Source: Octopus sinensis (lineage: Eukaryota). From it: a stretch of 56,991 nucleotides of DNA. A program made the position numbers and the translations under genes. Position 1 is the stretch's first letter. Each line of letters opens with the position of its first letter. This document shows, piece after piece, positions 1,836-52,936 of this stretch. Under the pieces are notes generated by a model. The model worked only from the letters and a program-made list of their open reading frames with translations, had not been told where the DNA came from and did no database searches. The stretch lies in NCBI RefSeq assembly GCF_006345805.1, contig NW_021833618.1:1-56991 (forward strand), in the 5' to 3' direction.

Positions 1836-2639
1836 TCAAAAGCAATCCTTCCAGCATAGAAGATTGCTTGATGCGGGATATCGGCAGAGGTTGCAATCTA
1901 TTGTGAGTAAACTAACACACCATAGGCTTCCTCAGTGATTATTAGTGTTGCGTCTGTTGTTGCAAATGGATCCATTTCTACACTTTTATCAGTTAATTTG
2001 ATATCTAGCTGATTTGTCACTGTTGTAATCCTTATATTTGAATATATAAGTATACATTATGGGTTGGGACCCATTTGTGAATATGCACATTTTCTGGCCG
2101 TCAATAATACTACAAAGTCAGTAAGTTAAAATACCTCATGTAGAGGGGAAGACTGATTTTTGGCCTCAGGAAAATGGTATTTAATGGCATGTCACTTTAA
2201 TGTTAGAATAAGATTTGTACAGGCTTAATGATCCGACTAGACTTGCAAAGGCATCTACGTTCACGTAACGAAGGTCACTACAGGATTGCAGTTCTCTAAT
2301 GATTCAAAATATTTGAATGTACATATGGCGTAGGTGAATCAACCCGTCAAATGAGTTGTTTAGTATTCTCTTTAGCGAGTCTCCACGACAGTGACTAGTG
2401 TTAATAAAATGTTGATTACAATTGCTCCAAGTACGTTAAATTCGAGAATATTTCTCCATTTGGAAATAGAACGTTGCTAGAAATTGCAATTATTGTGTTA
2501 TGTTCTGCAGCATTTGCTCCATTGAATTCACAGTTTTGCAAAACTCTGATTCAAATAAGAAATTTTTCAAAAACTGTTGTGTTAAATCACAGTCTCTTTG
2601 GACCACTAAGTCAACCAAAAGTAGGACAAGTGAAAGCAT
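1836..2639 (-). CDS. Secreted LRR protein, family copy A1 (intact, 8 exons, 207 aa)
   Basis: Exons 2639-2575, 2545-2420, 2394-2323, 2295-2221, 2194-2135, 2109-2056, 2030-1921, 1897-1836; seven GT-AG introns of 23-29 nt; 624 nt open frame. Hydrophobic N-terminus MLSLVLLLVDLVV; LRR-like 72/75-nt phase-2 exons (FHCRGDSLKRILNNSFDGLIHLRH, IELQSCSDLRYVNVDAFASL); C-terminal CNLC...CWKDC. Confidence 0.85.
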
Positions 2640-12270: not shown

Positions 12271-12699
12271 CTCACAAGACAATAGAAATGGCGGAACAGT
12301 CCGTGGCGACACCAAAGGAGTACTCCACAACAAACACTCCATTTTCATTGCCAAACTCATCCTGGACAATATATCCGTTGGCCCCCATTCTTATATTCAC
12401 TCAATATTTCACAAGCTGAACACATCCCACTTCATTATCTCTTCTTTGCTGTCGATCCGCCTCTTCTGCCAGATTCATAGGCCAGGATACAGCTTTCGTG
12501 TGTTTGACAAGTTCCACTGATGTCTCGTGGTGGCTACTTCCTTCATTCAGTCGCTTATTGATTGCCCCAACATCCATTGCAATACTTGTACGTGATTCGC
12601 CGCCGTGGCTGAGAGTTTATGTTTTTTTAACTGCTGGTGATTCACACACTTGTCATGGAAATTCTACGCTCCTTTTCTGATTTTCCTTGGACACAAATG

Positions 12700-13531: not shown

Positions 13532-13603
13532 TCCCGCGACCCGGATTCGAACCGGGGACCTAAGGATCTACAGTCCTCCGCTCTACCACTGAGCTATCAC
13601 GGG
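13532..13603 (-). tRNA. tRNA-Tyr(GTA), intronless, 72 nt
   Basis: CCCGTGA TA GCTC AGTGGTA GAGC G GAGGA CTGTAGA TCCTT AGGTC CCCGG TTCGAAT CCGGG TCGCGGG A; complete cloverleaf, C1:G72, downstream T-run. Confidence 0.93.
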
Positions 13604-17085: not shown

Positions 17086-17865
17086 AAGAATATCCTCGAT
17101 GATGAGGTCCCACAAAACCTTCAAGTCAATTTTCTGCGTTTTTGTTAAAATGAACAACAAGAAAGTCCTCGACTCACATGATGTGGTCCCCCAAAACCTT
17201 CAAGGTAAAAATTAAAAAAATTATTTTCTGCGTTTTTGTTAAAATGAACAACAAGAAAGTCCTCGACTCACATGATGTGGTCCCCCAAAACCTTCAAGGT
17301 AAAAATTAAAAAAATTATTTTCTGCGTTTTTGTTAAAATGAACAACAAGAAAGTCCTCGACTCACATGATGTGGTCCCCCAAAACCTTCAAGGTAAAAAT
17401 TAAAAAAATTATTTTCTGCGTTTTTGTTAAAATGAACAACAAGAAAGTCCTCGACTCACATGATGTGGTCCCCCAAAACTTTCAAGCCAAAAAATTAAAA
17501 AAATTATTTTCTGCGTTTTTGTTAAAATAAACAACAAGAAAGTCCTCGACTCACATGATGTGGTCCCCCAAAACTTCAAGCCAAAAAATTAAAAAAAAAT
17601 TTTCTGCGTTTTTGTTAAAATGAACAACAAGAAAGTCCTCGACTCACATGATGTGGTCCCTCAAAACCTTCAAGCCAAAAAATTAAAAAAATTATTTTCT
17701 GCGTTTTTGTTAAATGAACAACAAGAAAGTCCTCGACTCACATGATGTGGTCCCCCAAAACCTTCAAGCCCAAAAATTAAAAAAAAATATTTCTGCGTTT
17801 TTGTTAAAATGAACGACAAGAAAGTCCTCGACTCACATGATGAGGTCCTCCACAACCTTCAAGCC
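17086..17865. repeat. 94-bp tandem minisatellite, 8 copies plus a degenerate first unit
   Basis: GAAAGTCCTCGACTCACATGATG recurs at 17161, 17255, 17349, 17443, 17538, 17631, 17725, 17820 (period 93-95). Confidence 0.95.
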
Positions 17866-18574: not shown

Positions 18575-19379
18575 TGCATTCTAGGTTAATTGTTTGGGAT
18601 GAATGTACGATGGCTCATAAAGGCGCATTCAAGCAGTTGACCGAACATATAGAGATATCAAGAATTGTAGCGACCATTTGTTTGGGGGAGCATTAGTTGT
18701 ATTGGCAGGTGATTTTAGACAGACGCTGCCAATTATTCAAAGAGGGACGCCTGCGGATGAATTGAATGCCTGCCTCAAATCGTCATATTTGTGGACACAC
18801 GTGAAAAAGGTAAGCTTAGATGTAAATGTACATGCACATTTACAAGGCGTTAATAGCATATTCCCACAAATCCTTCTAGATATTGGAAATGGGGCAATCA
18901 CTTCAGAAATGCACGACCAGAAAATTAGGCTACCGGAAGAATTATGTATTTTCGTAGAAACAGCAGAAGAATTATTGAATGCCGTCTATTCCGAACTATC
19001 TGAACACTACGTGAATTTCGACTGGCTGCGTGAACGAGCTATATTAGCTCCACTTAATGATGAGGTACTTAATATAAATTTAGATTTATTAATGAAAATC
19101 CCTGGCAGAGAAAGAATATATAAATCGGTCGACGTTATTATGGACCATGAAAGGGCCTGCGATAGATTTAAGAGACTACAATTTCCGCTGAAGATAAGTT
19201 TTGCTATGACAATAACAAGGCCAGGGACAGTCTTTAAGGTAGTAGGCTTATTTTTAGAGAACGAGTGCTTTTCACATGGCCAGCTGTATGTGGGGTGCTC
19301 AAGGGTAGGTAGAAGAGAAATTTATTTATATTTGCCAAGGATGGACGGACTGCAAACATCGTTTATCCACAGGCCTTAG
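18575..19379 (+). pseudogene. Helitron PIF1-like helicase C-terminal fragment
   Basis: WDECTMAHK, GDFRQTLPII, RAILAPLNDEV, QFPLKISFAMTI, FSHGQLYVGCSRV motifs; central portion deleted. Confidence 0.88.
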
Positions 19380-25160: not shown

Positions 25161-25754
25161 CTTGTTTTTATCTCCCCGCCGATGATTTTCTTCCTTGTTT
25201 TTTCTTTTTCTTTTTGCTCAATAAACACTATTCTATTCTATTCTATAAAAAGTACTAATAAAAAAGAGATAAAAACCTATTAAAAATTACGAAGCTAAAT
25301 ATACAAACGCGAAAAAGACGAGACATAGGCCAAATATACACTTCCAGACAGAGAAATTGTGGATGGAGCCCACTTGTAAAGACAATTATCACAAGCAATT
25401 GAGACTCTTATGGAGAAAACCACACCAGAACTATCATTACGAACCCGGTGGGACCAAACAAAGCGGGCAATTTCCAAGGCAGCCAGTATATGTCTTGGAG
25501 TCCGAAATCATTGTGCCCTAAAACTGGATCACCACCCGAACGTGCCAGATATGGCAAAGCATCGCAGAGAGGTACGGCTAAGGCCGCAAACACGTCAGAC
25601 GAGATTAAGAAAAAGGAGCTTAACATCCAACAAAGGGGACTAAAGTGCAAAATTCAAAAGATGAACCGAAAATACTCACGAGAAATCATTACATCCCTAC
25701 TAAAAGATGTGGAATGCCTAAAAGACAATTCAAGGATGTATGCGGCCCTACGAC

Positions 25755-27239
25755 CAGTGTTCCCTCTAAGCTGCGCGCGTGCGCGGCCGCGCAGCAGTTT
25801 GCACCTTGCTGCGCAGCGAAATTTTTTTCTGCGCAGTAGAAAGTATAATATTAAAAATTGCTATTTTTTTTAATTTTTTATATGAATTTATATATTCTTA
25901 TTTTCATTTCAAAACGAAAACGTGTCTATAATATTGATATGAGACTTAAGAAAAATTCTCCTTCTTTTAAGCCGGAATGGTTGATAGAGTACGTCGAAAC
26001 CTTAACACCAGATTCAAAAATTCCCCAACATGTGCAACTGGGTGATATTTTTAGTTTTTCCGAAGACTGCGGAGTTGTTTGTAAAATATGTGGCGACGCT
26101 AAAGCGACTTGTGATTTTGCGAGTGGAAAAACCTGGGATATATGGAAATTGGATTATCTGAAGAGACATATTACCCATAAAATTCATTCAGATTCAATAA
26201 TAAAATTAAGAAGAATTCGAGCAGGAACTGGAATCAGCTGCTTGCTCACAGAGTCTAAGGATGACCGACAGATGAGATTCAAAATGAGTGATCGTGCACG
26301 AAGTAAAATTGAAAAAGTGAAAATTCTCATTGACAATGTTATTTTGGCTCTCTCCATGAATGCTTCATTACTTTCTGTTATGAATATACATGATCATTTG
26401 CTGTTAAAGCTTTGATAAAAAACTACACAATTTTAATTGAATATTTCAAGAAACAGGTTGAAGATGATAATGATCCGATTGCAAAATATTGCTTAAAACA
26501 ACTTCAAAATCCTCTTATTCATGTTGCTTTAACTGTCTTAAATGAAATTTTGGCTGAATTAGCAGATTTGTGCACAGTTTTCCAAAGAAGCTGTATATCG
26601 ACCATAGAAGCTGTACAGTTTGCCAGAGCAAAAATTTCGAAGCTGAAATCTCAATATTTGGATGGAAATGAAATTTACTGGAGTGACAGTGTGAAGATGT
26701 TGTTATCAACAACTGGTTATGGAGATACAATACAGATGAAATCCTATGCTTTATCGAGCATGTTTATCTGCATTTACAAGAAAGATTTCCAGCCGACGAA
26801 TTAAGAGAATGGGTAGCATTTGACAATCAAGCAATTCAAAATCAGACAAACTTTGAATTTGGAAAAGAGGAGATAATTAAATTAGCGAAAAAATATGAAA
26901 ATTTACTCTCTTCAGAAGTCCCACTCATAAAACTGCAGTCGGAATATACAAAACTAAACTACGTAATAGACTTGAGATTGACCATTTGGAGATGATCATG
27001 CGAATCAAGTTCTATTTAACAAGTGGGAATACAGTTGATCTTGATCGAGTATACAAATTTTGGATACAAAATAAAAACAGAAGAGAATATCCAATTGACT
27101 AGACCTATTTTTTTAACCATTGGTTTTTTAATTGTAAAATTTCCCCCCCCCAAAAATTTTTTGCACACGTCACTTTATAACGCTGCACAATGCAATGTGC
27201 CCAGCGCGCATAGCTGCCACTCGCTTAGAGGGAACACTG
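25755..27239 (+). mobile_element. Non-autonomous hAT (ZNF862-like) copy 2
   Basis: TIR CAGTGTTCCCTCTAAG; perfect TSD CCTACGAC (25747-25754 / 27240-27247); zinc-finger-like CKIC..WKLDYLKRH..H remnant. Confidence 0.93.
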
Positions 27240-27985
27240 CCTACGACTACTGCGGACTACTAAGAAAGGACAAAACATCCTCCATATTAAAGACAAGATG
27301 GAAAATTTGTGGGTAATCCGAAAAAAAAGCAGAGCTGATGCTGAATAAAGAAAACACGAAACTTCGAAACCTTGCTGAATAAAGAAAACACGGACTTTCC
27401 CTGTTCCCAGGGAGATGCAAAAGCGTTAAAAATCCCAATCACAGCGGAAGAGGTGGAACTAGCGATAAATAAACTGAGGAACAACAAGAGTGCTGGGCCG
27501 GACAACATAAGCCCCGAGCTCCTAAAATATGGGCCAAAAAAACTCAGCGACACAATTGCAAAAACCCTAAATGAAATTTTCGAAACTAGTACCGATCTGG
27601 GACTTGGAAATGGATTACTAATACCCATACAAATCCAAACAAACCAAAAGGACCCGTAGAAAATCTCCTCCCGATAATACTCCTGAATTCGATACGCAAG
27701 GTGCTGGCAAACGTCGCACTAAGGCGGATAAAGGGTGTGGCGGATCAATATCTATCACCGAGTCAAAGTGGGTTCCGAGATGGGAGGTCTACGGCAGACA
27801 TTGTATGGAGCCACAGATGGCGCTGCGCAACGCACCAAAGATTCAAGAGCACAACTACCGTGCTGGGAATAGATCTCTCCAAAGCCTTCGACTCAATAAA
27901 CAGACAGAAACTGATGAATGTGCTTGAGCAAATACTGGATGAATCATCGGTTAGAACAGGTGTTCTCAACCGGGGGCGAATCGCC

Positions 27986-29887: not shown

Positions 29888-29969
29888 ACCGATATGGCCG
29901 AGCGGTTAAGGCGGTGCACTTAAGATGCATTGGACAGTGTCCTCGTGGGTTCGAATCCCACTGTCGGTA
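29888..29969 (+). tRNA. tRNA-Leu(TAA), 82 nt
   Basis: ACCGATA/TGTCGGT acceptor stem, GTGCA CTTAAGA TGCAT anticodon arm, long variable arm, GGTTCGAATCC T-arm, downstream TTTT. Confidence 0.93.
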
Positions 29970-31754: not shown

Positions 31755-33670
31755 CAGTATAACCTCCATTTGGGGCAGACCTCTGGCTTGGGGAACCTCT
31801 ATTTTTGGGGAAACCTCTATTTTTGGGGTAGTTTGAAAAGGATATAATTTTTATGCGGTAATTTCCAAATTTAGAAATTACCGGAACCTCTAAGTGGGGC
31901 ACAGGATTTTTAATTTATATACATATTTGCTATTAAAATTAAAATTAATTATATAAACTTTCATTTGGAAGCCTCGTGTAATTTTTGTATTCTTGTTGTT
32001 ATGGCTCGTAAGCTTAGTCTTGAGTTAAAGATCAAAATTGCCAAGGAATTAAGTGAAAATAAACATCTTACTGAACGAGATATTGTAGATAAGTACAAAA
32101 TTAGTAAAGGTTTTTTATTAATGTAAGTTTTTAGGCGCTGTGTCACGTATTAAAAAAAATTATCTCAATTTTTTTAATACTGGGGCTGTTCAAACAGATT
32201 TTCCCAGAAATATTCAACGCTCTCCTCATACTTTATCCCAAAAATTGGATAAAATTGTTTTTGAGGCTTTCACCAAGACAAGGGAAGAATTTATTCCTGT
32301 GTCCGGTCCTCTTTTAAAAAATATTGCTTCCAAAGTAGCAAGGATGTTGAATTATTCGGCGTTCAAAGGGTCCAATGGCTGGTTGGAAAAATTTAAGAAA
32401 AGACATATGTTGTCATTTAAGACAATTAGTGGAGAGAAAAACTCTTCCGATGTTTCTTCGCTTGATATGTTTTTTTCCAAGTATGATGAATACGTAAAAG
32501 AATATGGTCTTCAAAATATTTTTAATTGCGACGAAACTGGGTTATATATTAAAAGGATACCTTCAAAATCATTTGTAAGTTCGGATGAAGATTGTTTCGG
32601 AATTAAAAGGAGTAAAGAAAAATTCACTATTCTTTTGTCGGTCAGTGCTTGTGGCGAAAAATTGAAGCCATTGTTAGTAGGAAAATATAAATCCCCACGT
32701 TGTATGAAAAACTTTAACCCTGAAGAACATGGAGTTTCATATTCATCATCTAAAAACAGTTGGATGACATCAGAAATATTTATTACATGGCTCACCATTA
32801 CAAATGAACAAATGATTACGCAAAAGAGAAAATTGTTTTGTTACTTGATAACGCAAGCTGTCACAAATATATCCATCTTTCCAACATTGAATTGTTTTTT
32901 CTCCCAAAAAATACAACCTCATTAATTCAACCGTTAGACATGGGTATTATTAAATCTTTCAAGTCCAATTATCTTAACGCTTTATTGGATTTTACTCTTT
33001 ATTTTGAGGACGTTGAGTTACAAATTGTTAATTTAAAAAAAATAAATCTTCGTCATGTCATAATAATTGTTGGAAAAACATGGCAAAATTTAAATCCTGA
33101 AACAATAACGAATTGTTGGGAAACAATTAATAACTGTCGGCAACAGATTCCTAGTTCAAATTTTTTAGTTAACAGTGAGAAAGAAAATTTGGACACGATA
33201 ATTGCAGACGTAATTGCTGAAAATGAAGAAGAAAATAATGATGAGTCAATATATGACCAAACTGAATGCAACTGTTCACACTTGGACACGATAACAGCAA
33301 TGAATAACCTTGAAGAGAATATTCACCGTTTGTTTCCCGATGCGTTAAAAGACTATTACAATTTCAGAAAAATATTGGGCATACATATGAAGAAATCTGC
33401 AACAGGAAACAAAATAACAGATTATTTTCGTGTATAATAGAATAAAAATTTTTTTCTACTTGAAAAATACTCTAATTATCAATAAAATTAGTGGAAAACA
33501 TGTTTAAATGTTCTTAAAAATACTTTATTTATTTATAAATTAATGAAAAATATGCTAAAACTATTAAAATTTTTATAAAAATAAAGAAAATTTCAGACCT
33601 CCATTTTTGGGGAAACCTCTATTTTTGGGGCAATTTTTCAAAATTGATGCCCCAAATGGAGGTTATACTG
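31755..33670 (+). mobile_element. pogo/Tigger-type DNA transposon (CENP-B HTH + DDE_1), frameshifted
   Basis: 23-bp TIR CAGTATAACCTCCATTTGGGGCA, TA TSD; ORFs 32140-32925 and 32838-33437 with FKGSNGWLEKFKKRH, NCDETG, LLDNASCH, QPLDMGII. Confidence 0.93.
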
Positions 33671-36000: not shown

Positions 36001-36649
36001 CACCAGTAAATATCATTAAAACTGCACAAGGGCTTTGGAAACCAGATTATCGAGGCGAAATAAGTATTCTTGTTCGGAGAAGCAGGGCGTAGAGCGCATG
36101 AGAAAAGTAAGTTTCGGAATAAAGAGATATTTCTTGAGTAGAAAAAGTTCCAGGTGTGATTCAAGTTTACAGTTTCGTGCGTGTTCTTCTATTGATGAGA
36201 GAAGTTAATATTGTTGTTAAAAATAGAGAGCCACAAGAAATAATAAATTCTAAAAAATGTCAAAAGAGGGCCATGGATTATGTGCTCGTGTGGATACCTT
36301 GTCTAGATCATGAACAGATTCATATCTCTTCTAAATTTTAAATAGTCGTTTTTTGTGGATACTGGCAATGTGCTTACATTGAAATTGATAAATTGATTGC
36401 ACTAATAATTTCTAGTGTCAGCCTTCAAATTATTCATTAAAAATAGTCCAACAACAGATTTTTATAATGTCAATTTGGGATTGACAATCGAGAGAGTATT
36501 TCTCAGAGAGCCGAATCTTAACATATATTTGTAAGAGATCATGTATCTTTGACTGTGACTACTCCATGTAACAACAGATAAGAAGTAGAACAAGGAAATA
36601 TTAGAACAAATAATTAGGTTAGTTAATAACTGATATTCTAATTTTTGAT

Positions 36650-37486
36650 TGATCACGATCCTTTCTCAGGTCCACTCATTCCCCCCACTCCTTAGCACCA
36701 CCTACATTGGGGTGTGATGGTAGCAGAGGTTGCAATCTATTATGAGTAAACTAATCCACCATCTGCAGGTTTCGATATTAGTACTCACGGGTAATATATA
36801 TCTGGTCCTATATTCACACTTTTGTTAGTTAATAACAAGGTGGCGATCGAATAAGTACTGATCGGCGGTCTCGTAATCCTTATAGGTGAATATCCAAGTA
36901 TTCATTATGGGTAGCGCCCCATTCGTGAATATACACATTTTCTGGCCATCAATAATACTATACACTCAGTAATTTAAAATACAGAAAGTTGAGGGGACGA
37001 TTGTTCTTAAATTAAACGCGACTGGAAAATGGAATTTGATGGTATGTAACTTTAATGTTAGAATAAGATTTGTACAGAGATGATAATGCGACTAAACGTT
37101 CAAAGTCATCTACATTCACGTAACAAAGTTTAGTAAAGTGATCTAATGATTCAAAATATTTGAATGTACATAGTATTTAGGTGAATCAACCCGTCAAATG
37201 AGTTGTTTAGTATTCTCTTTAGCGAGTCTCCACCACAGAAACTAGTATTAATAAAATGTTGATTACAATTGCTTCAAGTTCGTTAAATTCGCGAATATTT
37301 CTCCATTTGGAAATACAACGTTGCTATAAATTCGAATTAATGTTCTATGTCCCGCAGCATTTGCTCCATTGAATTTACAGTTTTGCAAATCTCTGATTCA
37401 AATAAGCAATTTTTCAAAAACCGTTCTGTTAAGTCACAGTCACTTTGGACCACTAAGTCAACAAAAAGTAGGACAAGTAAAAGCAT
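36650..37486 (-). pseudogene. LRR-family copy A2 (pseudogene)
   Basis: Same exon/intron layout as A1; exons 1-3 open (MLLLVLLFVDLVVQSDCDLTERDLQNCKFN..FFCGGDSLKRILNNSFDGLIHLNT); 8-nt deletion in exon 4, stop in exon 5, GT>GA donor, foreign 42-bp patch in exon 8. Confidence 0.85.
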
Positions 37487-37813
37487 TCTAATTAAAGCTA
37501 ATATTTTATTGCGAATAACTCATTGGTTAGACAACAAATAAATTAAAAACTTTATTAACTAAATCCAAAACCGAAAATAATAAGAAATTAAGTAATTATT
37601 GATCCTAGTTTTTGGAAATTTTTCTCATCTTGAGGGGACTCCATAACTCATTATTTCCACATTTACTTTCATGCTCAGAGTCATTAATAATTTGTCAATT
37701 TGTTTCATCTGGGGTTTTCGTATTATTAGTTTGTCATTGCAAACAACTGCCGTGATGACTTCTTTATTAGGCATATTAATTCCCATTCCTATGCTCCAGA
37801 ACGATGCTTTCTA

Positions 37814-38486
37814 TACCATTTCCCATACTAAATGGGATTAACACCAAACTAAGTGGGATTAGCAGAAAACTAAGTGGTATTAGCAGAAAACTAAATGGGA
37901 TTAGCAGAAAACTAAATGGGATTAACGTCAAACTAAATGGGATTAACACCAAAAAAATTCTTTTTTTAAATTTTATGTTAATGTCGGCAATATTTCGACA
38001 AATTTGTTTGAGGCAAGCACGGATTAAACATGGTGGTCCAGTTATTATGGTTTTGGACAATGCACCAGCTCACAGTGGTATCGAAGAAGTTCGCTTCTAA
38101 AAAAAACATTGCATCTAAAAGAAACCAAATTTTATTCCAACAAGGAGAAGGCTTATCAATTAAAGAGTATCGAACACGGATACTTGAACAAATAATTGTG
38201 GATAGAATGAAAACCATTACGTCTAAAGATTGTGTAAGCTTTATTTCTGGAATACAGGGAAATATTGCCGACACACTAAATATGGTTAACATAAAATTTA
38301 AAAAAAAGAATTTTTTGGTGTTAATCCCATTTAGTTTGGTATTAATCCCATATTGTTTGGTATTAATCCCATATTGTTTGGTATTAATCCCATATTGTTT
38401 GGTATTAATCCCATTTAGTTTGGTATTAATCCCACTTAGTTTGACGTTAATCCCACTTAGTTTGATGTTAAGTATGGGAAATGGTA
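37814..38486. mobile_element. Tc1/mariner-type non-autonomous element with 21-bp subterminal arrays
   Basis: TIR TACCATTTCCCATACT, TA TSD, empty site gctttcTAgtgtc at about 2965; internal VLDNAPAH remnant; about 6 left and 7 right copies of TGGGATTAACACCAAACTAAA-like units in opposite orientation. Confidence 0.88.
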
Positions 38487-40621
38487 TAGTGTCTTTTTCA
38501 TTAAAAGTGCCAAAATGTATGTTCTCGTCGGGCCTTGAACAAATAATCTTTCGATATAGGAGATAGAACACTTTGTAATACTTTTAAACCTACTCCGTCT
38601 CTATTCACAAAAAGATAGAACACTATTTTTTTTCATGATTGTCGTTTAAATCATATATTTTTACTGGAATGCCACATTTATTAAAGCAGAGGGAGATTGT
38701 GTATTATTTACGTCCATCCAAGCAGTGCTAATCCACGGATGCATATAAGAAAAAATTTTAGGCAAGCGGTGTCGCAGTGGTTTCTGTTTCGGAAGCAGTC
38801 AAGATGATTAACAAAGGAATTGTAGAGAATTGAGCAAGAGGAGAAATGCCTGGTTTCAATTACCTACAAAACACTGATTGGATGCCACCTACGTCGCACC
38901 GACTGCTGAAATCGATTGACGAGATGTCTGATAAATGAAATGATTGAGAAGGAGAGGGAAGAAGTATGCAGTATTATGTTGGACTGCCCCACCAATCTCA
39001 CTCACCCGAGATTAGGGTGTAATACTACAAGACAGTCGACGACCATCTATGCTACAATACGGAAATAGTCGACCCACCTAGAAAGTCTCTTATTTTACAT
39101 GTGTAGGAGGTGATACAAATCTTAGAGGCCTATTCGTAAGCACATTAATTGTCTCTGTTCTCTCTGCAGCCCGACAACCTCAACCGACTAGGGCCTTTCT
39201 TCAACTGGCAGTTTTTCACTGCGAAGTGAAGGAGATGCCTCACAAGACAATAGAAATTGCGGAACAGCCCGTGGTGACTCCAGAGGAGTACTCCACAACA
39301 AACACTCCATTTTCATTGCCAAACTCATCCTGGACAACCTCTGAAGCATTTTGAGTTTCGACTGGATACTTCCATAAAATCCGTAAATAAATCATTTATA
39401 AATTGAACAAAAATTGGCTAACTCAATATTATTCATAAGATATCTGTAAATAAGAAAATTTGTGAGGTTATTCAATAATAATTCGGTGGAAAGCACATTG
39501 CACGAATACATCTTCCAGCCTATAACTTTCTTCAATAATTACTCATGCGTGTTTCCAACATTGTTATGTTTCCATCTTCAATAATTACTCATTTGTGTTT
39601 CCGATCAAACTTAACTATTTATTGTAGTATCTACCAGAACCTCCAACAAATCATTAGATACTGCATTTTTCACTAATCATCAGTCGTTCATTGACAGAAA
39701 ATATATCAATATTGTCAATGGAGCTCAGAAAAGGAGCTCATATTTGTCGTAAACTAGAATTGACGTCGTATGCAATAAAGCGTGATCTAGACTGGCTATT
39801 TCCGTTTGGCGAGGGTTTCCTTACCGCGCAGTCTATCATCACTGAGTCATAGTCTGGCTATTTCAGAGTCCACGACTGAAAGTGTCAGTTGGAGGACTAC
39901 AAAGAGGCACTGAGTCGCCTTCCTTTCTTTTTAGTGTGCAATAAAGTCGATTATCTGTCGCTGTCTCTGCCAAATTGGCATTGCTGACTAAATTAAGCTC
40001 TAAACTCTTTGCTTAATGTAGTGAAATACGTTTACACCAGTAAAAAATGGCTTGCGAAAAGCCACAAATAAAGGTCACTAACCTACCTTACATAGTGAGA
40101 TAGTGGTCACCTAACCAAAGAAAACTGCGATCTGTTGCGCTTAACCAAGGGAATTAATTGACCCTACTTCTGTTGTACTCCATTGGGGGAACATATTGTC
40201 CACACACTCCCTCAAACACATCCATTCGTCATATTACTCAACATGACAACCCCAGGGGACCAAGTCTACTGAGTGTCGGCAAAGTCAAAGAGATGACCTG
40301 TAAAATAAACCATGGTCATTTAGTATGTTCCACAGAGTTTAATGTTCTCGGATGAATTTGTTGTATATGCCTGTCGACAATTGGGAATTATCAGGTGTTG
40401 ACGTAGTAGTAAGAGGGTCACCAAGAGTTCCTTGAATAGAAAAAGCAACTATACACAGCTTCGCAAAACATTTGACAGCATTCGCATTTTCTAAGCGTTA
40501 ATGTGAAGGGACGTGTGAACAGGACTGTCATGAACAAACTAAGTGACTGACAGGCACCCTTGATGTATCTAAAAGGAGTAGGTTGTTGAATGAGATTAGT
40601 AAAGAGAGAGTAAGTGGAGTA

Positions 40622-41196: not shown

Positions 41197-43943
41197 TCAT
41201 ACACAGTCATACGCCTTATTTGCCTTTTTTAACTGCTTCTTAACCCAATTGACAGTCTTCTTGCCGTTGGGGGTGCATGTGAGCCGGTCGTTGGTCAACA
41301 GTTGGTTGACGGAATCGATGGCGAAGAGGGAACGAGTTTGTGTGGAAAACATGCCCAACATGTCCCTAGGAGTGAGAAGGTGTGGACACCCCAATAGTCC
41401 GCACAAATTTTCGAGGGTGGAAATGTCGTAAATGGAAGAGTTGGCAGCGACGGAAGTGAGAAAGTCGAACAAGGGGAGATGTGGATTGAGAAGGGAAGAG
41501 TGTGATGCTGGTGGTTAAAGAACAAGGCACCCGCGAGTCCCTGGACAATGCCGGTGTATGCCTGAATGCATGCTTCGTGTGTCTGTGAGAGGAGAGCGAG
41601 GCCTTTTGTGTGGACTGGAATGAGGGAAGGGAGGACTTGGTCGAACGAGGCGGAGGCAGCGGATTGGAGTGTGTCGAGGACGAGGGTGGCGAATGGGGCA
41701 AAGTGGTGGCCGAGTAACAAGGCCAAGTCCCCGAAGCCGGCCAAAATGACAGCCTTGAGTTTGTCGGAGGTGTGTGAACTCTGTGGAATAGTGAGGAGAG
41801 TTACGAGGAGGATATTCCAGAGAGAGGACATGAGGGGGTGTAAGTAAAGGAGGATGTGTTCAGGGGAGTGGATGTCGGCGAGGAGTGCCAGACAGGCGAA
41901 CAAGACCTGTGATGGGGAGAGTGGAGAACCTGTTGGTCGTTGTGGGTGTGAGGAGATTAAGCAAGAGGGGGAGGATGGTGTGAGTGTTAGTATCGTCGAG
42001 AAAGGGAGAGAGGGCGTAAAGGGCGTCCTCGTGGACATGGTGGTGGGCGGGGGAGGAGAGGAAGGTGGAGAGGATGTGGAAGGCAGTGTCTGCGTGTGTG
42101 AGTTGTGAGAGGGGGAGGAGGAGGACAATGGACTGTGGTGATGGGGAGGAGTACTCTGATGAGTGCACAGAGGAGTGACTGTACGTGGAATTGATTGTCG
42201 AATTGGAGTGTATGTTGTAGAAATTGGACGATGAGAGGGAAGTAATGTGAGAGGACAGGAGACATGTCGGGGAGTATGTTGTGTGTGATCAGACAGATCA
42301 GAGTCTCGAAGTACACCGAGTCGTAGTGTGTAGTGCAGAGGCGAAAGAGTGCGTCGAACAGATGGTGAAAGTGTGGGGAGAGTGAGTGAGGGGCAGTGGA
42401 AGCAAGAGTGGAGAGTGCCTACAAGTGAATAAGAATGGTAACGTAGCAGGCATTGGTGGCCACTCGTGGTTCGTGTGTGAGACACGTGCGGAGTGTGTGG
42501 GCAATGTGTGGAAGGGGAGGTGGGGGACGTGCTCGCACAACTCCCGAGTACCCAGACGACTGTGTCGCGGACTGCCACACTGGGGTCGGTAGTGGCGAGT
42601 GTGAGGAGGAGGGGGAGGACGCGGAGGGCGTGTGGGGCAATGTTGTGGCGGACGACACAGCCTGGAGTGACACACAAACACGACCGAATGCCATCACGGC
42701 GCCTCCCGCATATTCCAATGGGCATGTCCGATGAACTGTTCTGCAAAGTGGAGGACGTGGGGGAGGATGTGGTCGTGGCAGCATTCGCTGAGGAGTGTGA
42801 GACAGACGGAGGCTGCTTTGGGGGGATCCAGCAGCCGTCGGTGTCGTCATCCTCGTGTTGTTTGGGGAGGTGTGTGAGTATTGGGTATATAATGTGGGGC
42901 ATGGCTGCCTGTGCGTACAACTTGGACGAGTGGGGGGAGGACAACTCCACCTCACAAATGCTCGACCAGAACTCGATTCCCTGGAGGACGTGTGACTCAC
43001 TTTGGATGGCATTGAGCGTGATCTGTACATGTCATGTCCTCACTACCGGGAAGATCAAGTCGGCCATGTAGTCCTCCAAGTACTCGTAAAAGTGTGCGGT
43101 CATGACATCCAGGCACTTGAGGGACATGTCGGCCACGTCCACGTCCGACGAGTGGCACGACTGGCAGACCACCTTCATTATCACGTCCCGTTCATTCTAT
43201 CGTAGACCAGAGGAGGGGGACCTTGGCCTGCAGGAGGGGGACTGTCGAGTGGAGAGCCCTCAGTGCGGCCAATTGGATATATCCACTAAATAGGACAAAC
43301 ACCACTCACACACTCGCCTCCATTCCACGCACAATCGCACTCACCAACAAGTCCTGTGTGTTGGCCATGTACGAACAGTCCTGCACTATTACCACACACA
43401 CACCAGGTCATTCGCTATGAACCCCAGAGCCTCCAAACTGGCCTCCGTCACACGCCCCTCCATCACGTTGTTGCACAATAACACCACTCCCTCCCCCACT
43501 CTCCAAACGCCATCTCCACACACGCCACCGCAGAATACACCATCGCCACACTGCTCGGTCTCCACCTCTCCTTTTCCAGTCCACACACAATCTGCCTCAT
43601 TACTCACTCCTCACATTCCATTTATCCTCTCACGCGCCCACTCTTCCTGCTCTCTCCATCGTTGCGCCAGCCACACACGCTTCTCACTGTTCACACTCCC
43701 AAATATTATATTCTTCAATTGGATGCACGCCTGTCTACATACTACCTCCTTGCTCTCCCCCTTTATTACTTCCGACAGCTCCAACATCACTTCCGTCTAC
43801 ACTTTACTCACACCACCCACTAAATTCCTTTCACACGCCTCCTCCAGCACTTCCAGGCACTTCTTCACTTCACACGGGTCTACAACTTTACACAACACTC
43901 TACTTCCCAACACTGATTGCTCCAACAACATTGACAGATCCAT
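41197..43943 (-). CDS. KPNB1: Importin subunit beta-1; many micro-introns and apparent frameshifts
   Basis: MDLSMLLEQSV, ASLEALGFIANDL, EDDDTDGCWIP, AVMAFG, VRDTVVWVLG, KAVILAGFGDLAL..VLDTLQSA, EACIQAYTGIVQGL, KKTVNWVKKQLKK match importin-beta blocks in the correct order. Confidence 0.85.
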
Positions 43944-48469: not shown

Positions 48470-51400
48470 GTGACGTGTATGTCTGTTTTCACCAGTCCGC
48501 AAACAAATCCTGAGGGCCTTCCTACACAAAATACAAATAATAATAATCAATCAGAAGTTGGAAACGTGTCTTCAGGGATACATGGAACGCCTGAAACTTG
48601 CAATGATCCTTATATTGAACCTTCACGAACGCATTTGCTCCCCCTTAAATCATTGATAACTGAAACACATTCTAACGACAAATTGCAGTGGATATCTTCT
48701 GTTGTTGATTCGGCTAAACGGAGATTTGGAAGAATCCCTCGTGGTGGATGGAACCTCATTGTACATAATTTCAATACCCGTTTTCTTGTTCAGAAAAGCA
48801 TCTCCGATGTTAAAAAATTATTGAAAGTGAAACCCCATAGTGAGACTTGTGGTAATCAAAATGATGTGGGTGTAACAGAAAACGGAAATTCACTGTCAAA
48901 AACAGAAATTTCTTTATATGGAAAATGTAAAGAAGAATTTAATTTCCAAATTAAGAGAGTTGTATCAATATCAAGGGATTCGAGAAAGCCTACCAAAAAG
49001 ATTCCATATAAATTGGTTAAGAAAGATATTCTGGTTGCTTTGGATGCAGTGATTTCAAATTATGTATTGACTTGTCCTCCAAAGGATATAAACGAAATCA
49101 CGGATATTATTTTTGCAGGACAATGTGCATACGAAAATTTGGTTCTTAAAAATAAAATAAGAACCTCTTGGAGGGAAAATATTGAGAAGAGAATTACTAA
49201 ATTCAAAGAGAACCTCACTCTTATTGCTAATTTCTCCAGTCTGAAATCCAAAAGTGAAAAGGATACGGCCCTGGACTTTATGTGCTCCTTTGGATATAAG
49301 AAGTCGAGAAAGGGAGAAACCACCAGAATATGTACGTTAATTGAAGATAGAATAAAAATCATGGAAAAAAGGATTTCGATTTATGAGTCACGAAAATCAT
49401 TTAGAAGAGACAATTTTTGTTTTGAACTCAACAGAAGGAGGTTTTACCGAAACCTGAATGGTGGAGAAGATAATAAATATACGTTGCCAGAAGGTGAATG
49501 TTTGTCATTTTGGGAGAAGATATGGAAAAAAGATGAAAATCATATTGTTACTGATGTTGTTGGAAAACGTATAACTGGCATAGAACAATCCCCAGTTGAC
49601 ATCAAACCAGACTTTATCAAAAGTATTATTAACTATGCGCCAAACTGGAAGACTTCTGGATGCGATGGAGTATACTGCTTTTTATTAAGAAGTTTGAATC
49701 TCTCCATAATTATTTATGTGATGAAATTTTGAAGATTATTAATGGAGATTACTGTCCTGGTCAGTGGTTTTACACTGGGGTTACATTTCTCATCCCAAAA
49801 AAAGCTTGTTGTGAATCACCTAATGACTTGCGTCCGATTACATGCATGCCTATACTATACAAACTTGTTACAAAATGTGTCAACACTAAACTTACAGACT
49901 ACATTGAAGCTTTTGGTCTTGTTTCGGATAACCAACTGGGAGCTAGAAGACATTGCCAGGGTGCAAAAGAACAGGCTTTAATAAACCAGTGCATTAACAA
50001 TCACTGTGGAAATAACTTATTTGCGACATGGATTGATATAAACAAAGCATTTGATTCTGTTAACTATGAATTTTTATCGCTGGTATTGGATTATTCTGGA
50101 CTCCCTGAGTGGATTGTGAAGTTTATTAAAAGTTTGATAAGTAAATGGAAAGTGATTCTGAATCTCAATGTAAATAGAATTGGAACAGTGAAATTAGAAA
50201 GAGGAATTCTTCAAGGAGATTCACTATCTCCCCAACTTTTTACGCTGGTAATGGATCCGTTGAGCAGGATACTAAATCACAAGTTTCCTAAAATCTGTAT
50301 TGACCATAATGACCCGTCTCAAATAACATACTCAACTAATCATCTGCTATTTATTGATGATTTGAAAATACTTGCTGAGAAAGAAAATACGATCTTGAGG
50401 ATGATGGAAAGTATTGATGAATACTTCAGTGTTGTTGGTCTCAGGAGGAATTCTGAAAAATCTGCAACCAATCTGAATTATGTTAAAGAAACTAGAAGTT
50501 TTGACGGATATGATGGATATCGATATCTGGGAGTCCTGGAGGATAAAGGAAGCAATGTATTGAAGCATGAAGTTATGAAAAAAATTGCAGAAAATGTAAA
50601 GAAGAGAATTGAAAGCTTTGTGAGCACGAAGATAAATGCAGTGAATCTATTCAAGGCGATTAATGAATATTCTCTATCACTTTACAATTACTATATTGGA
50701 CTAATTGACATTGAGCCACACGAGTTTCAAGCCATTGATACCGAAGTTCGAAGGATTCTATCTAATTTACATGTTCATCTGAAACCTGCAAATAAGGAAA
50801 GATTATATATAAGCAGATCTAACCTTGGAAGAGGACTTAATTCAATTGTCCATAAAAGTGAATGCATGTTATACCAATTTTTGACTGATCTTGAAAGAAA
50901 GTCTGCAATGTGTCTCAGAAAGGCTGGAATCTTGCGGGTCTTGAAAATAAATAAAACACATATGGCCACCATCGCAAGATTTCTTACCTTCAAATACAAT
51001 ATTGAAGATCCTTCAGAATTGAATATAAACATAATCAAGGAGAATCAACAAAAGAGTCTAATGAAGATTATTAAATCGAAGATGGTGCATTCCGTACTTT
51101 TCAAATGTTGTGAGGATCAGAATGTTGACATCAATATGTCTACGGAATGGCTAGTGAATGGAAACAACAGTCCGAGATCAGAAGCAATGTATTGTATTAT
51201 TCAGGATCGAAATATATTTTTCAACGATAACGGAGGAATGTGCAATCATTGTAATCAAGCTAAAAAATCTGTTGATCACATGGCTACAAGATGTAGCAGA
51301 ATGCTGAACAGTGATTATACCAGAAGACATAATGAAGTTATAAGATGCATCCATTTGCATCTCTGCCGCCAATATGGAATCAGGAAAACCAAAAGGTTAA

Positions 51401-52070
51401 AGTCACACACAGTCCAGTCAGTTAGCTCAAATCATAAAGTGGAGATAAGAGTGGACATCACCTTGCAGACAGATGTTCATGTAAAAAACAATATACCAGA
51501 TATCTTTGTCCTTGATAAAAAGAAAAACGAAATCACTCTAATTGAAGTCGGAATTACTTCCCACGCCATGTTAAAGCAAGTGGAAGTAGAAAAACTGCAT
51601 AAATATGATCTTCTTGCTGGAGAATTATCTCAAATCCACGGTGCGAAGGGAACGATAATCCCCATTGTCCTCACATGGGACGGGATAGTTTCTAAATTCT
51701 ATAAGTCTTATATGGAAAGACTGAAGTTGGATGCTTCCACTAGATCGTATATACAATCGCTGACGATTAAGAAGACATTGGAGGCCATGCTTGTTGAACA
51801 TAAACATGGAGTGGAAATTGAAAAACATGAGGAACAAGTTTCAAGGGCCACCAACCACCTCCTAAAATTGGCTAGAGAAACAACAGATCCATCAGATTTG
51901 CCGGAAGATGTGTCTCATGTGTCATATGAAGTGTTAGAAGAGGAGAATACGCAGATCCAGTGCAACGGTCCAAAAAGGAGGAGAATTATATAGATTAGTT
52001 AGTTATTAGTAACTAAAGACGTTAATTTATAATTAAATTAAATATTATATTAAAAAAACAGTTTAATAAA
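48470..52070 (+). mobile_element. Near-intact R4/Dong-like RLE retrotransposon (about 1170-aa single ORF with one -1 indel)
   Basis: ORFs 48470-49732 and 49660-51993 join if one T is added to the TTTTT at 49679-49683; RT (QGDSLSP, FIDD), CNHC..H..C, RHN and PDIFVLDK..LIEVG motifs. Confidence 0.93.
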
Positions 52071-52130: not shown

Positions 52131-52936
52131 ATGCTTCCACTTGTCCTATTTTTTATTCATTTAGTGATCCAAAACGACTGCGATTTGACAAGAAGGTTAT
52201 TGAAGAATTGCTTATTTTAAAAGATATCTTAATTTATACAACTGTATTTTCAATGGAGAAAATGCTGCGGGAGATGGGATAGATATTACCATAAAGAGAA
52301 AAGTTACATTTCCTAATGGAGAAATATTCTCCCATCTAAAAAATTTGAAACAATTGTAATCAATATTTCATTGATATTAGTGAGTGTAAAGGAGACTCGC
52401 TGAAGAAAATACTAAACAACTCATTTGATGGGTTGGATAAATTAGACTATATGTATATTTAAATATTTCGAATTATTAGAATGCTGTATTACTGTGATAA
52501 CCTTCGTTACGTGAATGTAAATAGTTTTGCACGTCTAGCCGCATTATCACATCTGTACAAATCTTATTCTAACATTAAAGTTTTATGCCGTCAAATACCA
52601 TCTTTCAGTCGCCAAAAATCAGTCGTCGTGCCACGCTTTAGTATTTTAAATTACTGACTGTGTAGTTTGTATCACGACCAGAAAGTGTGCATGTTCACAA
52701 ACGGGTCCCAACCCACACTGTATACTTTGTTATTCTCATATAAGAATTACGAAAGTGATGGATGAAGCATATATGATGTTAGCCGACAACAGTGTGGAAC
52801 TAAAATTATATAAAAATCAAAAGATAACCCTCACTATGCAAGAAGCATTTGGTGTATTTGTATACTCACAATAGATTGTAACTTCTGTGACCACCCGATC
52901 CCCAATAATATGATCTGCACAAGTGAATGTAACTGA
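52131..52936 (+). CDS. Secreted LRR protein, family copy A3 (intact, 8 exons, 208 aa)
   Basis: Exons 52131-52195, 52224-52355, 52381-52452, 52480-52554, 52581-52640, 52666-52719, 52745-52851, 52875-52936; introns 28, 25, 27, 26, 25, 25, 23 nt, all GT-AG; 627 nt open. MLPLVLFFIHLVIQNDCDL..FECKGDSLKKILNNSFDGLDKLDYIMLYYCDNLRYVNVNSFARL..CNFC..CTSECN*. Confidence 0.87.

Follow-up and report, generated by a model that had tools for sequence, protein, structure and literature searches.

A clustered family of predicted secreted mini-LRR proteins, diversifying at the predicted concave face, and its inactivated copy A2 on a probable dicyemid contig of an octopus assembly

In a window of 56,991 nt (the whole stretch of DNA analysed here, from contig NW_021833618.1 of the Octopus sinensis assembly GCF_006345805.1), two related genes, A1 and A2, differ from each other in exons 1-3 mostly by amino acid replacements, while their introns and upstream flanks are nearly identical. 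A sequence-only reading of the window had ascribed this pattern either to strong diversifying selection or to exon-limited gene conversion from a donor pool, and the question raised by the locus is which of these processes acts here and on what kind of gene. Our best explanation, to which we give a probability of about 0.75, is that the locus belongs to a clustered family of secreted mini-LRR proteins of a dicyemid-type parasite, that the concave face of these proteins is diversifying, and that A2 was inactivated by conversion.

The A2 locus and its divergence from A1

The A2 gene model was rebuilt on the minus strand from an alignment of three copies and, later, one of 33 copies. Its six exons measure 65, 126, 72, 67, 67 and ~133 nt and its five introns 29, 25, 27, 26 and 25 nt; the introns are all GT..AG and in phase 2. 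The parts of the locus, its surroundings and the other two copies in the window are as follows (handles such as L020 denote family copies):

37422..37486, minus strand: A2 exon 1, with the ATG at 37486; codes for the predicted signal peptide MLLLVLLFVDLVVQS and for the first part of the N-terminal cap
37393..37421, minus strand: A2 intron 1, 29 nt, phase 2
37267..37392, minus strand: A2 exon 2, 126 nt; N-cap cysteine and first LRR, with hypervariable codons 23-25, 38-48 and 62-63
37242..37266, minus strand: A2 intron 2, 25 nt, phase 2, between x3 and L4 of the LRR motif
37170..37241, minus strand: A2 exon 3, 72 nt, one LRR running from FFCGG through the invariant framework DSLKRILNNSFDGL to a hypervariable end
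37143..37169, minus strand: A2 intron 3, 27 nt; contains the 5' junction of the converted tract
37076..37142, minus strand: A2 exon 4, with an 8-nt deletion and a frameshift leading to a stop at codon 92
37050..37075, minus strand: A2 intron 4, 26 nt, GTACAAATCTTATTCTAACATTAAAG
36983..37049, minus strand: A2 exon 5, with a 7-nt insertion common to L020 and L027
36958..36982, minus strand: A2 intron 5, 25 nt
36825..36957, minus strand: out-of-frame remnant of A2 exon 6 (C-terminal cap region)
36462..37142, minus strand: converted tract of ~0.7 kb, acquired by gene conversion or double recombination from a truncated pseudogene of the L020 type
37487..37813, minus strand: A2 proximal upstream region, 98.5% identical to its A1 counterpart
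37814..38486, no strand assigned: non-autonomous element of the Tc1/mariner type; insertion point 328 nt upstream of the A2 ATG
38487..39025, minus strand: distal part of the upstream flank of the duplicated unit; identity to A1 (2967-3512) 96.8%
1989..2639, minus strand: A1, intact paralogue, 172 aa
52131..52765, plus strand: A3, intact paralogue of the second clade, 167 aa

A2 is a pseudogene, one inactivated copy of the family, which had been overlooked before, and the selection signal described below is therefore a property of the family and not of the A2 locus. The 8-nt deletion in exon 4 is also present in L020 and L027. Downstream of the junction in intron 3, A2 and the pseudogenes L020, L021 and L027 share 97-99% identity (positions 1641-2325 and 2367-2569 of the A2 locus match L020/L027), while upstream of the junction A2 resembles the A1 clade; flank of the unit type resumes at 36099, running downwards. 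On both sides, the outer flanks of the A2 unit match L004, L005 and L008 at 96-98%, and since all three share these flanks, L004 is not singled out as an allele of A2. CCAAT- and TATA-like boxes (CTAACCAATGAG...AATAAAATAT) stand upstream of A2 and are kept even in the A3 clade. The Tc1/mariner-type element, with a TA target-site duplication, carries terminal inverted repeats (TACCATTTCCCATAC) and has arms made of 21-nt tandem repeats, and the corresponding site in A1 is empty. The A1 locus recurs on three other contigs at 99.9-100% identity. A3 is ~77% identical to A1 and A2, and its clade has a 28-nt intron 1 and six extra exon nucleotides, with the frame kept.

Comparison of A1 (2639-1989) with A2 (37486-36825) reproduced the counts of the sequence-only reading. 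Introns 1-4 differ at two of 107 nt (1/29, 1/25, 0/27 and 0/26), whereas exons 1-3 differ at 28 of 263 nt (6/65, 14/126 and 8/72), mostly by replacement, with 20 replacement and two silent codons (Fisher's test of exons 1-3 versus introns 1-4, p=0.003). The upstream flank, described as near-identical, differs at 22 of 862 nt, with five differences in the 326 nt up to the transposon (98.5% identity) and 17 in the 536 nt beyond it (96.8%); the comparison of exons 1-3 with this flank gave p=3.5e-7. By NG86, exons 1-3 carry 25.0 non-synonymous and 3.0 synonymous changes (dN 0.134, dS 0.054, ratio 2.46), an excess of dN over dS that is not significant for this single pair (p=0.15). The motifs FHCRG and IELQSC of A1, FFCGG of A2, and FECKG and IMLYYC of A3 were all found again, and the suggested clustering of replacements at exposed LRR positions held for concave LRR codons set beforehand (8/12 versus 12/75 of the other codons, p=6e-4). 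Exons 4-6 of the two copies, left unmentioned earlier, are 24-30% different and intron 5 is 16% different, and the 3' flanks are essentially unrelated (70% identity). The exon/intron contrast is confirmed as real, and it is family-wide.

A clustered gene family and the source of the contig

The family comprises ~50 clustered genes, the predicted proteins of which (~165-172 aa) would consist of a signal peptide, a short cysteine-containing N-cap, ~4 LRRs of 24-25 residues and a conserved C-terminal cap. In the 33-copy alignment, all copies keep the six exons and five GT..AG introns, with their frame and boundaries, and cysteines are invariant at positions 17, 27, 66, 93 and 141. The frame is open from ATG to stop in 24 of the 33 distinct copies and broken in nine; the truncated copies L020, L021, L027 and L047 are degenerate pseudogenes with common frameshifts. 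The intact A1-clade copies share a conserved ATG, signal peptide and proximal 245 nt of upstream sequence, and a CCAAT/TATA-like block is conserved between the clades. The assembly is redundant, with several loci present 2-4 times at 99.4-100% identity, and some of the 'paralogues' on separate contigs may be alleles of different parasite individuals.

Pfam LRR_8 matched A3 with 28.3 bits (cut-off 27) and A1 with 16.1 bits, and the family profile matched PDB structures of LGR4, LRRTM, LRIG1, TLR13, TLR5-VLR and VLRs at E=6e-13 to 1e-5, the best being LGR4 (E=5.7e-13) and LRRTM (7.5e-13), with the repeats in canonical motif register. These matches point to typical (LRR_8-type) LRR proteins; the Pfam model for BspA-type LRRs (LRR_5) scored 17.9 and 24.5 bits, under its cut-off of 27.7. 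Animal extracellular 'typical' LRR ectodomains (LGR4/5, LRRTM, LRIG, TLRs, Nogo receptor) have the same 24-residue LxxLxLxxNxLxxIxxxxFxxL register. The genes of the family have one repeat per ~72-75-nt exon with introns at a constant motif position; LGR and glycoprotein-hormone-receptor genes, too, have one LRR per ~72-bp exon. Unlike these ectodomains, the family has only ~4 repeats, no transmembrane or other domain, no match to Pfam LRRNT or LRRCT, and an orphan C-cap. For this cap (QKMCIFTNGSQPIMYTYIFKYKDY), no relative was detected in a set of 1.84 billion representative proteins; HMMER, run exhaustively with the exon-6 ORF, returned two weak repetitive matches only, a homologue search with full-length A1 found none, and a search of a phage collection gave no match.

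The contig itself, a point missed by the sequence-only reading, appears to derive not from host DNA but from a second organism that was assembled together with a genome of the Octopus vulgaris type. Only unplaced contigs carry the family, the LINE of the window and the intron-4 26-mer, and one of these contigs (292 kb) has at least eight family copies. Actin genes have exon gaps of 19-45 nt on unplaced contigs versus introns of 2-6 kb on the chromosomes, and the mitochondrial COX1 of the assembly is 100% Octopus vulgaris. The window's importin-beta is 22-25% identical to animal importins, and its best matches are animal. Dicyema introns measure 26.2±1.9 nt (PMC2222250), animal introns below 30 nt are known from Myxozoa and Dicyemida only (PMC13644364), and the genome of D. 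japonicum has a GC content of 36.7%, is 49% repeats and contains LINEs in many copies (PMC6736024). The family introns (25-29 nt) and the exon gaps of the actins on unplaced contigs agree with the ultra-short introns of a dicyemid nuclear genome, and on this circumstantial evidence the second organism is most likely a fast-evolving animal with ~26-nt introns, a renal-sac dicyemid. A ciliate origin, considered for 25-nt GTA..TAG introns, was rejected given the standard stop codons, the LINE/Helitron/pogo repeats and the animal best matches of the importin. The unplaced contigs of this chromosome-level octopus assembly appear to hold megabase-scale parasite sequence, which matters for its annotation.

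Diversifying selection and the constraint on introns

Diversifying selection across the family, one of the two processes proposed earlier, is well supported: among ~30 paralogues omega exceeds 1 gene-wide, and a site class of ~5 recurs periodically at LRR x positions. The codon site models suggested as a check were run with our own code, which reproduces the iqtree lnL of -3889.01 (relative branch lengths fixed; NEB, not BEB). For 24 intact paralogues the whole-gene M0 omega is 1.37. The LRT is 234.7 for M8 versus M7, 214 for M8 versus M8a and 218.9 for M2a versus M1a, the latter with 16.7% of sites at omega 5.3; across models ~17-21% of codons have omega near 5.3, and 41% of codons are at omega 0.10. 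Exon-wise partitions with their own trees, which mitigate but do not remove the inflation of site-model LRTs by recombination, were significant in five of five cases (summed LRT 168.9). A significant codon class with dN/dS > 1, robust to recombination, is present in the family.

Pairwise counts gave pN > pS in 54 of 55 pairs of the A1 clade. At 20 concave codons chosen beforehand, pN/pS was 2.5 and 2.0, with pN > pS in 55/55 and 36/36 pairs, respectively. For the A1 clade, pN/pS is ~1.2 at codons beyond the patches, and in the A3 clade whole-gene pN is below pS, the selection signal being confined to the patches. Changes per site at codon positions 1, 2 and 3 were 1.67, 1.19 and 1.16. A raised NG86 pS at patch codons was set aside as a path-averaging artefact of multi-hit codons. 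Selected sites recur with a period of ~24 residues (40/42/44, 62-67, 86-92, 111-117 and 131-136) and correspond by motif register to x2, x3, x5, x7 and x8 of each repeat; this register would place them on the concave LRR face, the predicted binding surface. Tyr, Asp, Asn, Ser, Lys and Arg abound at the x positions of LxxLxLxxN, set in a leucine framework that is conserved. It is these x-position residues, on the predicted concave beta-sheet, that diversifying selection repeatedly replaces.

The introns, to which the exons had been compared earlier, evolve ~1.5-2.5 times slower than synonymous sites and are therefore not a neutral benchmark, which the sequence-only reading had missed. Intron 4 is identical in 44 of the 53 copies of the assembly. 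Since every phase-2 intron lies at one repeat position, between x3 and L4, a near-invariant intron has hypervariable codons on either side. The introns are conserved because the copies are recent and because splice-signal constraint is strong in ultra-short introns; such introns can interrupt hypervariable coding patches, with the predicted splicing signals almost wholly intronic. Likewise, because units of several kb were duplicated, the flanks, promoters and introns of recent copies are still 95-99% identical. Pairwise BLAST identities were used for the flanks after a nine-unit (2.6-kb) global alignment was dropped, the inflated flank diversity of which beyond -250 and +1000 is due to non-homologous insertions.

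Recombination, alternative explanations and known systems

Recombination and conversion between paralogues shuffle segments and also kill genes, in a birth-and-death mode of evolution. The PHI test gave p<=0.001 in both clades, A2 itself is a mosaic in which the L020-type tract (~0.7 kb) represents a segmental transfer between family members, as in known conversion systems, and L008 is another, with an exon 2 like that of L007, an exon 4 like those of L012 and L009, and an exon 6 like that of L006. These findings, the position of the A2 junction in intron 3 and the existence of possible donors (nine of 33 distinct copies and four truncated ones are broken) favour the reading that exon-sized tracts are copied from silent or pseudogene donors, with the introns as homology anchors, in the manner of programmed antigenic variation or of the diversification of chicken immunoglobulins. 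We nevertheless regard this reading as unlikely. The hypervariable patches form 21-25 haplotypes in 27 genes, so that each is nearly unique to its gene and the diversity does not come from a small cassette pool; the pairwise-distance correlation between neighbouring patches is equally low across introns and across exon frameworks, and the tracts are thus not exon-bounded. Each intact copy has its own promoter region, ATG and signal peptide, which gives no sign of a donor-fed single expression site. Moreover, neither dN > dS nor an omega near 5 at periodic sites arises from conversion by itself, and the single clear conversion destroyed its gene. Exon-limited conversion from a donor pool, as proposed earlier for the exon/intron contrast, was accordingly not borne out, the patches being unique and not exon-bounded.

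Mis-assembly of a repeat family, or the mixing of parasite strains or species in one assembly, is improbable, although every copy is on unplaced contigs, several loci recur at near-identity (see above) and A2 lacks an independent replicate. Against it, one contig carries three divergent copies and the 292-kb contig at least eight, A1 and A3 are base-for-base identical on independent contigs, and the A2 tract differs by 1-3% from L020 and L027 and is therefore no simple mis-join of them. Very improbable, too, is the reading that the patch codons owe their diversity not to selection but to targeted hypermutation, through a local mutator or templated mutagenesis. Of the hypervariable codons that differ, half do so at 2-3 nt, with neighbouring synonymous divergence of ~5%, as such a process might leave them, but at hypervariable codons that keep the same residue synonymous differences are not raised (0.024 vs 0.037 and 0.035 vs 0.075 elsewhere), and the vicinity holds neither a template repeat nor a dedicated enzyme; the reverse transcriptases of the window are ordinary LINE ORFs. 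Least probable of all is relaxed constraint, under which decaying pseudogenes would have gathered their replacement excess by neutral drift. The frameshifts of A2 and eight other distinct copies and the pN/pS of ~1.2 outside the patches of the A1 clade are what it would expect, but neutral decay leads to omega near 1 and not 5.3, and would not leave 41% of codons at omega 0.10, 24 of 33 frames open, framework, cysteines and splice sites conserved, and variable sites periodic; the site-model, partition and concave-codon results already contradict it.

Under the preferred reading of a diversifying family of a dicyemid-type parasite, the proteins would be secreted ligand binders that form a germline-encoded repertoire at the parasite-host interface or serve self/partner recognition; their splicing, expression and secretion are predicted from the DNA. 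The analogy with immune receptors drawn earlier is fair for how the family works, but it is not a statement of membership. Like the family, the VLRs of lamprey and hagfish are small capped LRR binders with diversity at concave x positions and variable sites rich in Tyr, Asp, Asn and Ser. VLR diversity, however, arises somatically by insertion of cassettes into an incomplete germline gene, whereas the intact copies of the family are complete germline genes (24 of 33 distinct germline copies), with their own promoter region and signal peptide and with no stalk or GPI signal.

The body of a dicyemid has some 30 somatic cells. Dicyemids are not known to have an immune or adhesion repertoire, and we know of no molecules by which they contact the cephalopod host. 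No LRR family of dicyemids came up in a search of the literature, and LRRs go unmentioned in the published D. japonicum genome paper. It is possible, and we put it forward tentatively, that dicyemids carry a germline VLR-like library of ~50 secreted mini-LRR binders, driven by a host arms race or by clone or species recognition in the renal sac; if true, this would be the phylum's first candidate host-interface gene family. A bolder version holds that pseudogene-to-gene conversion at the invariant introns, somatic or clonal, might vary the expressed repertoire. For roles in host attachment, immune evasion or host specificity, such a clustered, strongly diversifying family of predicted secreted binders is an obvious candidate, and it offers a concrete handle for experiments.

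The same evolutionary regime of clustering, omega > 1 at x positions, recombination and many pseudogenes is seen in plant NLR and receptor-like-protein LRR clusters, where birth-and-death evolution and conversion between paralogues go along with diversification of the solvent-exposed xxLxLxx residues. The family differs from these by its unrelated lineage and architecture, its minimal, predicted secreted proteins and the introns that bisect each variable strand. Crotaline PLA2, three-finger toxins, conotoxins and, at the host-parasite interface, schistosome MEG/VAL proteins are likewise secreted, multicopy and of accelerated evolution, and in such families exons outpace introns and flanks, with dN > dS in the mature peptide (PMC2711939, PMC6062510, PMC3862624, PMC4350168). 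The present family is not homologous to these; its introns are 25-29 nt long and themselves constrained, and its variation is periodic on a repeat scaffold, unlike that of toxin-type families, which is spread over a toxin loop. With trypanosome VSG, Borrelia vlsE and Anaplasma msp2 the family shares a large size, many pseudogenes and segmental pseudogene-to-gene transfer, here into A2. Unlike those systems, it gives no evidence that promoterless donor cassettes feed one locus or that there is a single expression site, as the intact copies keep their upstream region, ATG and signal peptide, and the transfer into A2 inactivated its recipient.

The LRR gene family and its copies

Pattern searches located exactly three copies of a small split LRR gene in the window, of which A2 is the copy under study:

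36825-37486, minus strand: A2, a small split gene
1989-2639, minus strand: A1, the second copy
52131-52765, plus strand: A3, the third copy

In the sense-strand gene model six exons are separated by introns 1-5 of 29, 25, 27, 26 and 25 nt; exons 1-5 measure 65, 126, 72, 75 and 60 nt, and exon 1 starts with the ATG. All five introns are in phase 2 and have GT..AG boundaries, in most cases GTA..TAG, and a branch site resembling CTAAC or CTGAC. A1 and A3 have open frames of 172 and 167 aa, respectively, and their predicted proteins consist of a hydrophobic N-terminus (MLSLVLLFVDLVVQS), a short cap with cysteine, about four repeats of 24-25 residues and a conserved C-terminal block (QKMCIFTNGSQPIMYTYIFKYKDY).

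A3 scored 28.3 bits against Pfam LRR_8 (cut-off 27) and A1 scored 16 bits, below that cut-off. A profile of 13 family members matched the solved structures of LGR4, LRRTM, LRIG1 and TLR13, as well as TLR5-VLR chimeras, VLRs and the Nogo receptor (E range 6e-13 to 1e-5), with the canonical register kept in the alignments to solved LRR structures. Every intron lies at the same position in the repeat, between x3 and L4 of LxxLxLxxN, and exons 3 and 4 carry one repeat each. LRRNT and LRRCT had no match in the family proteins, the C-terminal cap had no relative among 1.84 billion representative proteins, and a word-indexed search with the full-length protein returned no relative. A BspA-type LRR identity was rejected because its score fell under the Pfam cut-off.

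A whole-assembly DNA search returned 126 candidates, of which at least 40 were scored matches, and a second search with A3 as query added further copies; the 26-nt intron 4 occurs 53 times in the assembly (44 exact), and a reversed-pattern control gave 0. We compared 43 loci, each with 1.5-kb flanks, representing 33 distinct full-length sequences (24 with intact and 9 with frameshifted reading frames) and 4 truncated copies. The copies are clustered, with at least eight on one 292-kb contig and at least five on a 455-kb contig, and fall into two main, interspersed clades, A1-like and A3-like. Several loci are present 2-4 times on different contigs at 99.4-100% identity, which indicates that the assembly is redundant for this organism and independently verifies the A1 and A3 sequences; some of the compared sequences may be alleles of different parasite individuals.

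Two otherwise intact copies, L005 (C12459:22841-23497) and L009 (C8899:44737-45392), have an in-frame TAG at codon 154 in the conserved C-cap, a codon that is TAT (Tyr) or TGG (Trp) in the other copies; the two may be truncated variants or pseudogenes of recent origin. All clades share a conserved 3′ block, GGTGTGTTAGTTTACTCACAATAGATTGCAACCTCTGC, which begins some 130-170 nt after the stop codon (examples at window 1900-1935, 36745-36780 and 52845-52885), is separated from it by a poorly conserved spacer, and could be a 3′-UTR or termination element.

Positive selection on the predicted concave face

The sequence-only reading had held that A1 and A2 diverge in their exons mostly by replacement while introns and flanks stay near-identical, and its counts were reproduced exactly, with differences at 2 of 107 nt in introns 1-4 and at 6/65, 14/126 and 8/72 nt in exons 1, 2 and 3, comprising 20 replacement and 2 silent codons. 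The upstream flank differs at 5 of 326 nt up to a transposon insertion and at 17 of 536 nt beyond it, and exons 1-3 diverge more than introns 1-4 (p=0.003) and more than the upstream flank (p=3.5e-7). The replacements cluster, as had been proposed, at LRR concave positions, which we fixed in advance (p=6e-4), and the motifs FHCRG/FFCGG/FECKG and IELQSC/IMLYYC had been quoted correctly. For this pair dN was 0.134 and dS 0.054 (ratio 2.46), an excess not significant in the pair alone (p=0.15).

With more copies omega stayed above 1. Our own codon-likelihood program, which matches the iqtree M0 likelihood of -3889.01, was applied to 24 intact genes over 160 codons with fixed relative branch lengths and NEB, and gave an M0 omega of 1.37. 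The results showed that M2a (-3648.51) fitted better than M1a (-3757.94; LRT 218.9), with 41% of sites at omega 0.10, 42% at omega 1 and 16.7% at omega 5.3, and that M8 was favored over M7 (234.7) and M8a (214). The PHI test indicated recombination in both clades (p<=0.001); M1a/M2a was therefore rerun with the alignment split into five blocks and a separate tree for each, and every block was significant (LRTs 17.5-56, sum 168.9 on 10 df). Independently of any tree, whole-gene pN exceeded pS in 54 of 55 A1-clade pairs. At 20 codons fixed beforehand from the motif (x2, x3, x5, x7 and x8 of four repeats), pN/pS reached 2.5 for A1-clade and 2.0 for A3-clade genes, with pN > pS in 91/91 pairs, compared with 1.2 and 0.5, respectively, in the rest of the mature protein. 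Parsimony changes per site were 1.67, 1.19 and 1.16 at codon positions 1, 2 and 3. Sites with posterior >0.95 (10, 21-23, 38, 40, 42, 44, 48, 62, 63, 65, 67, 84, 86, 87, 89, 92, 111, 112, 117, 131, 133, 135 and 136) are spaced with a period of about 24 residues and are mostly occupied by Tyr, Asp, Asn, Ser, Lys, Arg, Thr and His; where codons differ there, two or three bases have changed in half of the cases.

The introns are not quite a neutral yardstick. Pairwise intron divergence is 0.026 within the A1 clade, 0.042 within the A3 clade and 0.126 between clades, against synonymous pS of 0.05-0.07, 0.12 and 0.29, and tree changes per site are 0.48 for introns and 0.20 for the 5′ splice site, against 0.66 for third positions of invariant-residue codons and 0.85 for four-fold sites. 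Intron 4 (GTACAAATCTTATTCTAACATTAAAG; window 2195-2220, 37050-37075 and 52555-52580) shows no difference among the three copies in the window and is identical in 44 of 53 copies genome-wide although pS between the two clades is about 0.29, a conservation far above that of the other four introns, for which splice-signal constraint is the sole explanation we offer. Thus, the low intron divergence noted earlier is real but partly reflects splice-signal constraint in ultra-short introns; since dN>dS persists when flanks and synonymous sites serve as the comparison, the main conclusion stands.

The mosaic copy A2 and the place of gene conversion

A2 is a broken gene copy. Its exon 4 lacks 8 nt and its exon 5 has gained 7 nt, so that the frame ends at codon 92. 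Likeness to A1 is confined to the 5′ half; divergence reaches 24-30% in exons 4-6 and 16% in intron 5, and the 3′ flanks are unrelated. Over the stretch from exon 4 to ~450 nt beyond the stop, A2 shares 97-99% identity with a truncated pseudogene lineage located elsewhere in the assembly (L020, L021 and L027) that has the same -8 and +7 nt lesions, while its outer flanks on both sides match the ordinary duplication unit of three other loci (L004, L005 and L008) at about 98%. Together, these data indicated that A2 arose through gene conversion or double recombination, with the 5′ junction of the converted tract inside or beside the invariant intron 3. The insertion in its conserved upstream region is as follows:

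37814-38486: non-autonomous Tc1/mariner-type element, 328 nt upstream of the A2 ATG

The element, which A1 lacks at the corresponding site, has a TA target-site duplication; its inverted arms consist of 6-7 tandem 21-nt units and its center holds a transposase ORF remnant.

Diversifying selection and conversion from a donor pool had been offered as alternative sources of the exon/intron pattern, and the former is the one that the M2a and M8 tests bear out. Recombination is real in the family, A2 being its direct example, but the six hypervariable patches each have 21-25 distinct haplotypes among 27 genes, the pairwise-distance correlations between neighboring patches are low throughout (r ~0-0.5), with no further drop where an intron rather than an exon framework lies between them, and synonymous differences are not raised at hypervariable codons encoding the same residue, all of which argues against a donor pool. 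The last observation also disfavors local hypermutation. In addition, all intact genes retain their ATG and signal peptide together with the proximal upstream region, where diversity is 0.01-0.025 over -245..-1, and a CCAAT/TATA-like block is conserved even between clades, so that nothing points to one expression site supplied by silent donors, and the family falls outside what defines an expression-site system. In its mode of working it resembles VLRs and plant LRR resistance-gene clusters, in both of which the diversity lies at concave x positions; a VLR-type system was rejected because the germline genes are complete. The exon-versus-intron pattern resembles that of accelerated-evolution venom and parasite secretory families (PMC2711939, PMC6062510, PMC3862624, PMC4350168).

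The genes most likely form a birth-and-death family of small, putatively secreted LRR binders, in which recent unit duplications and occasional conversion keep flanks, promoters, introns and framework alike, positive selection repeatedly swaps concave-face residues, and pseudogene lesions are sometimes passed on through conversion, as exemplified by A2. The analysis established the gene structure, the size of the family, selection, recombination and the mosaic make-up of A2. Judged from their sequences, the proteins may be secreted, bind ligands and act at a parasite-host interface.

Source of the window DNA and its other features

The assembly (2.72 Gb) has chromosome-sized scaffolds, and its mitochondrial COX1 is 100% identical to that of Octopus vulgaris. 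In assembly searches the LRR family and a LINE reverse-transcriptase element of the window were found on unplaced contigs and never on chromosomes, and actin gene introns are 2-6 kb on chromosomes vs exon-to-exon gaps of ~19-45 nt on unplaced contigs. The window also carries the following gene:

41295-43031, minus strand: intronless importin-beta-like ORF, 578 aa, with HEAT and importin-beta repeats

This ORF shares no more than 22-25% identity with animal importin beta-1, a divergence far too great for a mollusc. Its GC content is ~47-54% in a neighborhood of 33-40%, and it could be a retrocopy or a gene that evolves very fast. Among animals, myxozoans and dicyemids are the only groups in which introns <30 nt are known (PMC13644364); those of Dicyema acuticephalum from O. 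vulgaris measure 26.2±1.9 nt and its proteins are highly divergent (PMC2222250), and in D. japonicum repeats make up 49% of the genome, LINE copies are numerous and GC content is 36.7% (PMC6736024). In the LRR family the five introns average 26.4 nt, and the window has ~33-45% GC and is rich in LINE, Helitron (PIF1) and pogo fragments. The window contig and the unplaced family contigs thus appear not to be octopus DNA, and on this circumstantial evidence we infer that the window derives from a dicyemid whose DNA was assembled together with that of its octopus host. The data point to substantial co-assembled dicyemid-like parasite sequence in the assembly, with the same loci in several redundant copies. 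The literature searched held no dicyemid LRR family.

A repeat of about 1.2 kb is present as inverted copies at 11100-12273 and 25752-27240 (94-100% identity, 13-16 kb apart), with fragments in the A2 upstream flank (39100-39337), and many unplaced contigs carry copies of the transposable element at 50000-51500 with 96-100% identity. A tandem array at 17129-17865 comprises 7.8 copies of a 94-nt unit (96% matches). The remaining features are:

5032-6363, 7961-9007 and 49633-51993: three LINE-type reverse-transcriptase ORFs
18621-19379: PIF1-helicase (Helitron-like) fragment
32122-32925: Tc5/pogo transposase fragment
13532-13603, minus strand: tRNA gene (Rfam RF00005, 71.5 bits)
29888-29969, plus strand: tRNA gene (Rfam RF00005, 60.8 bits)
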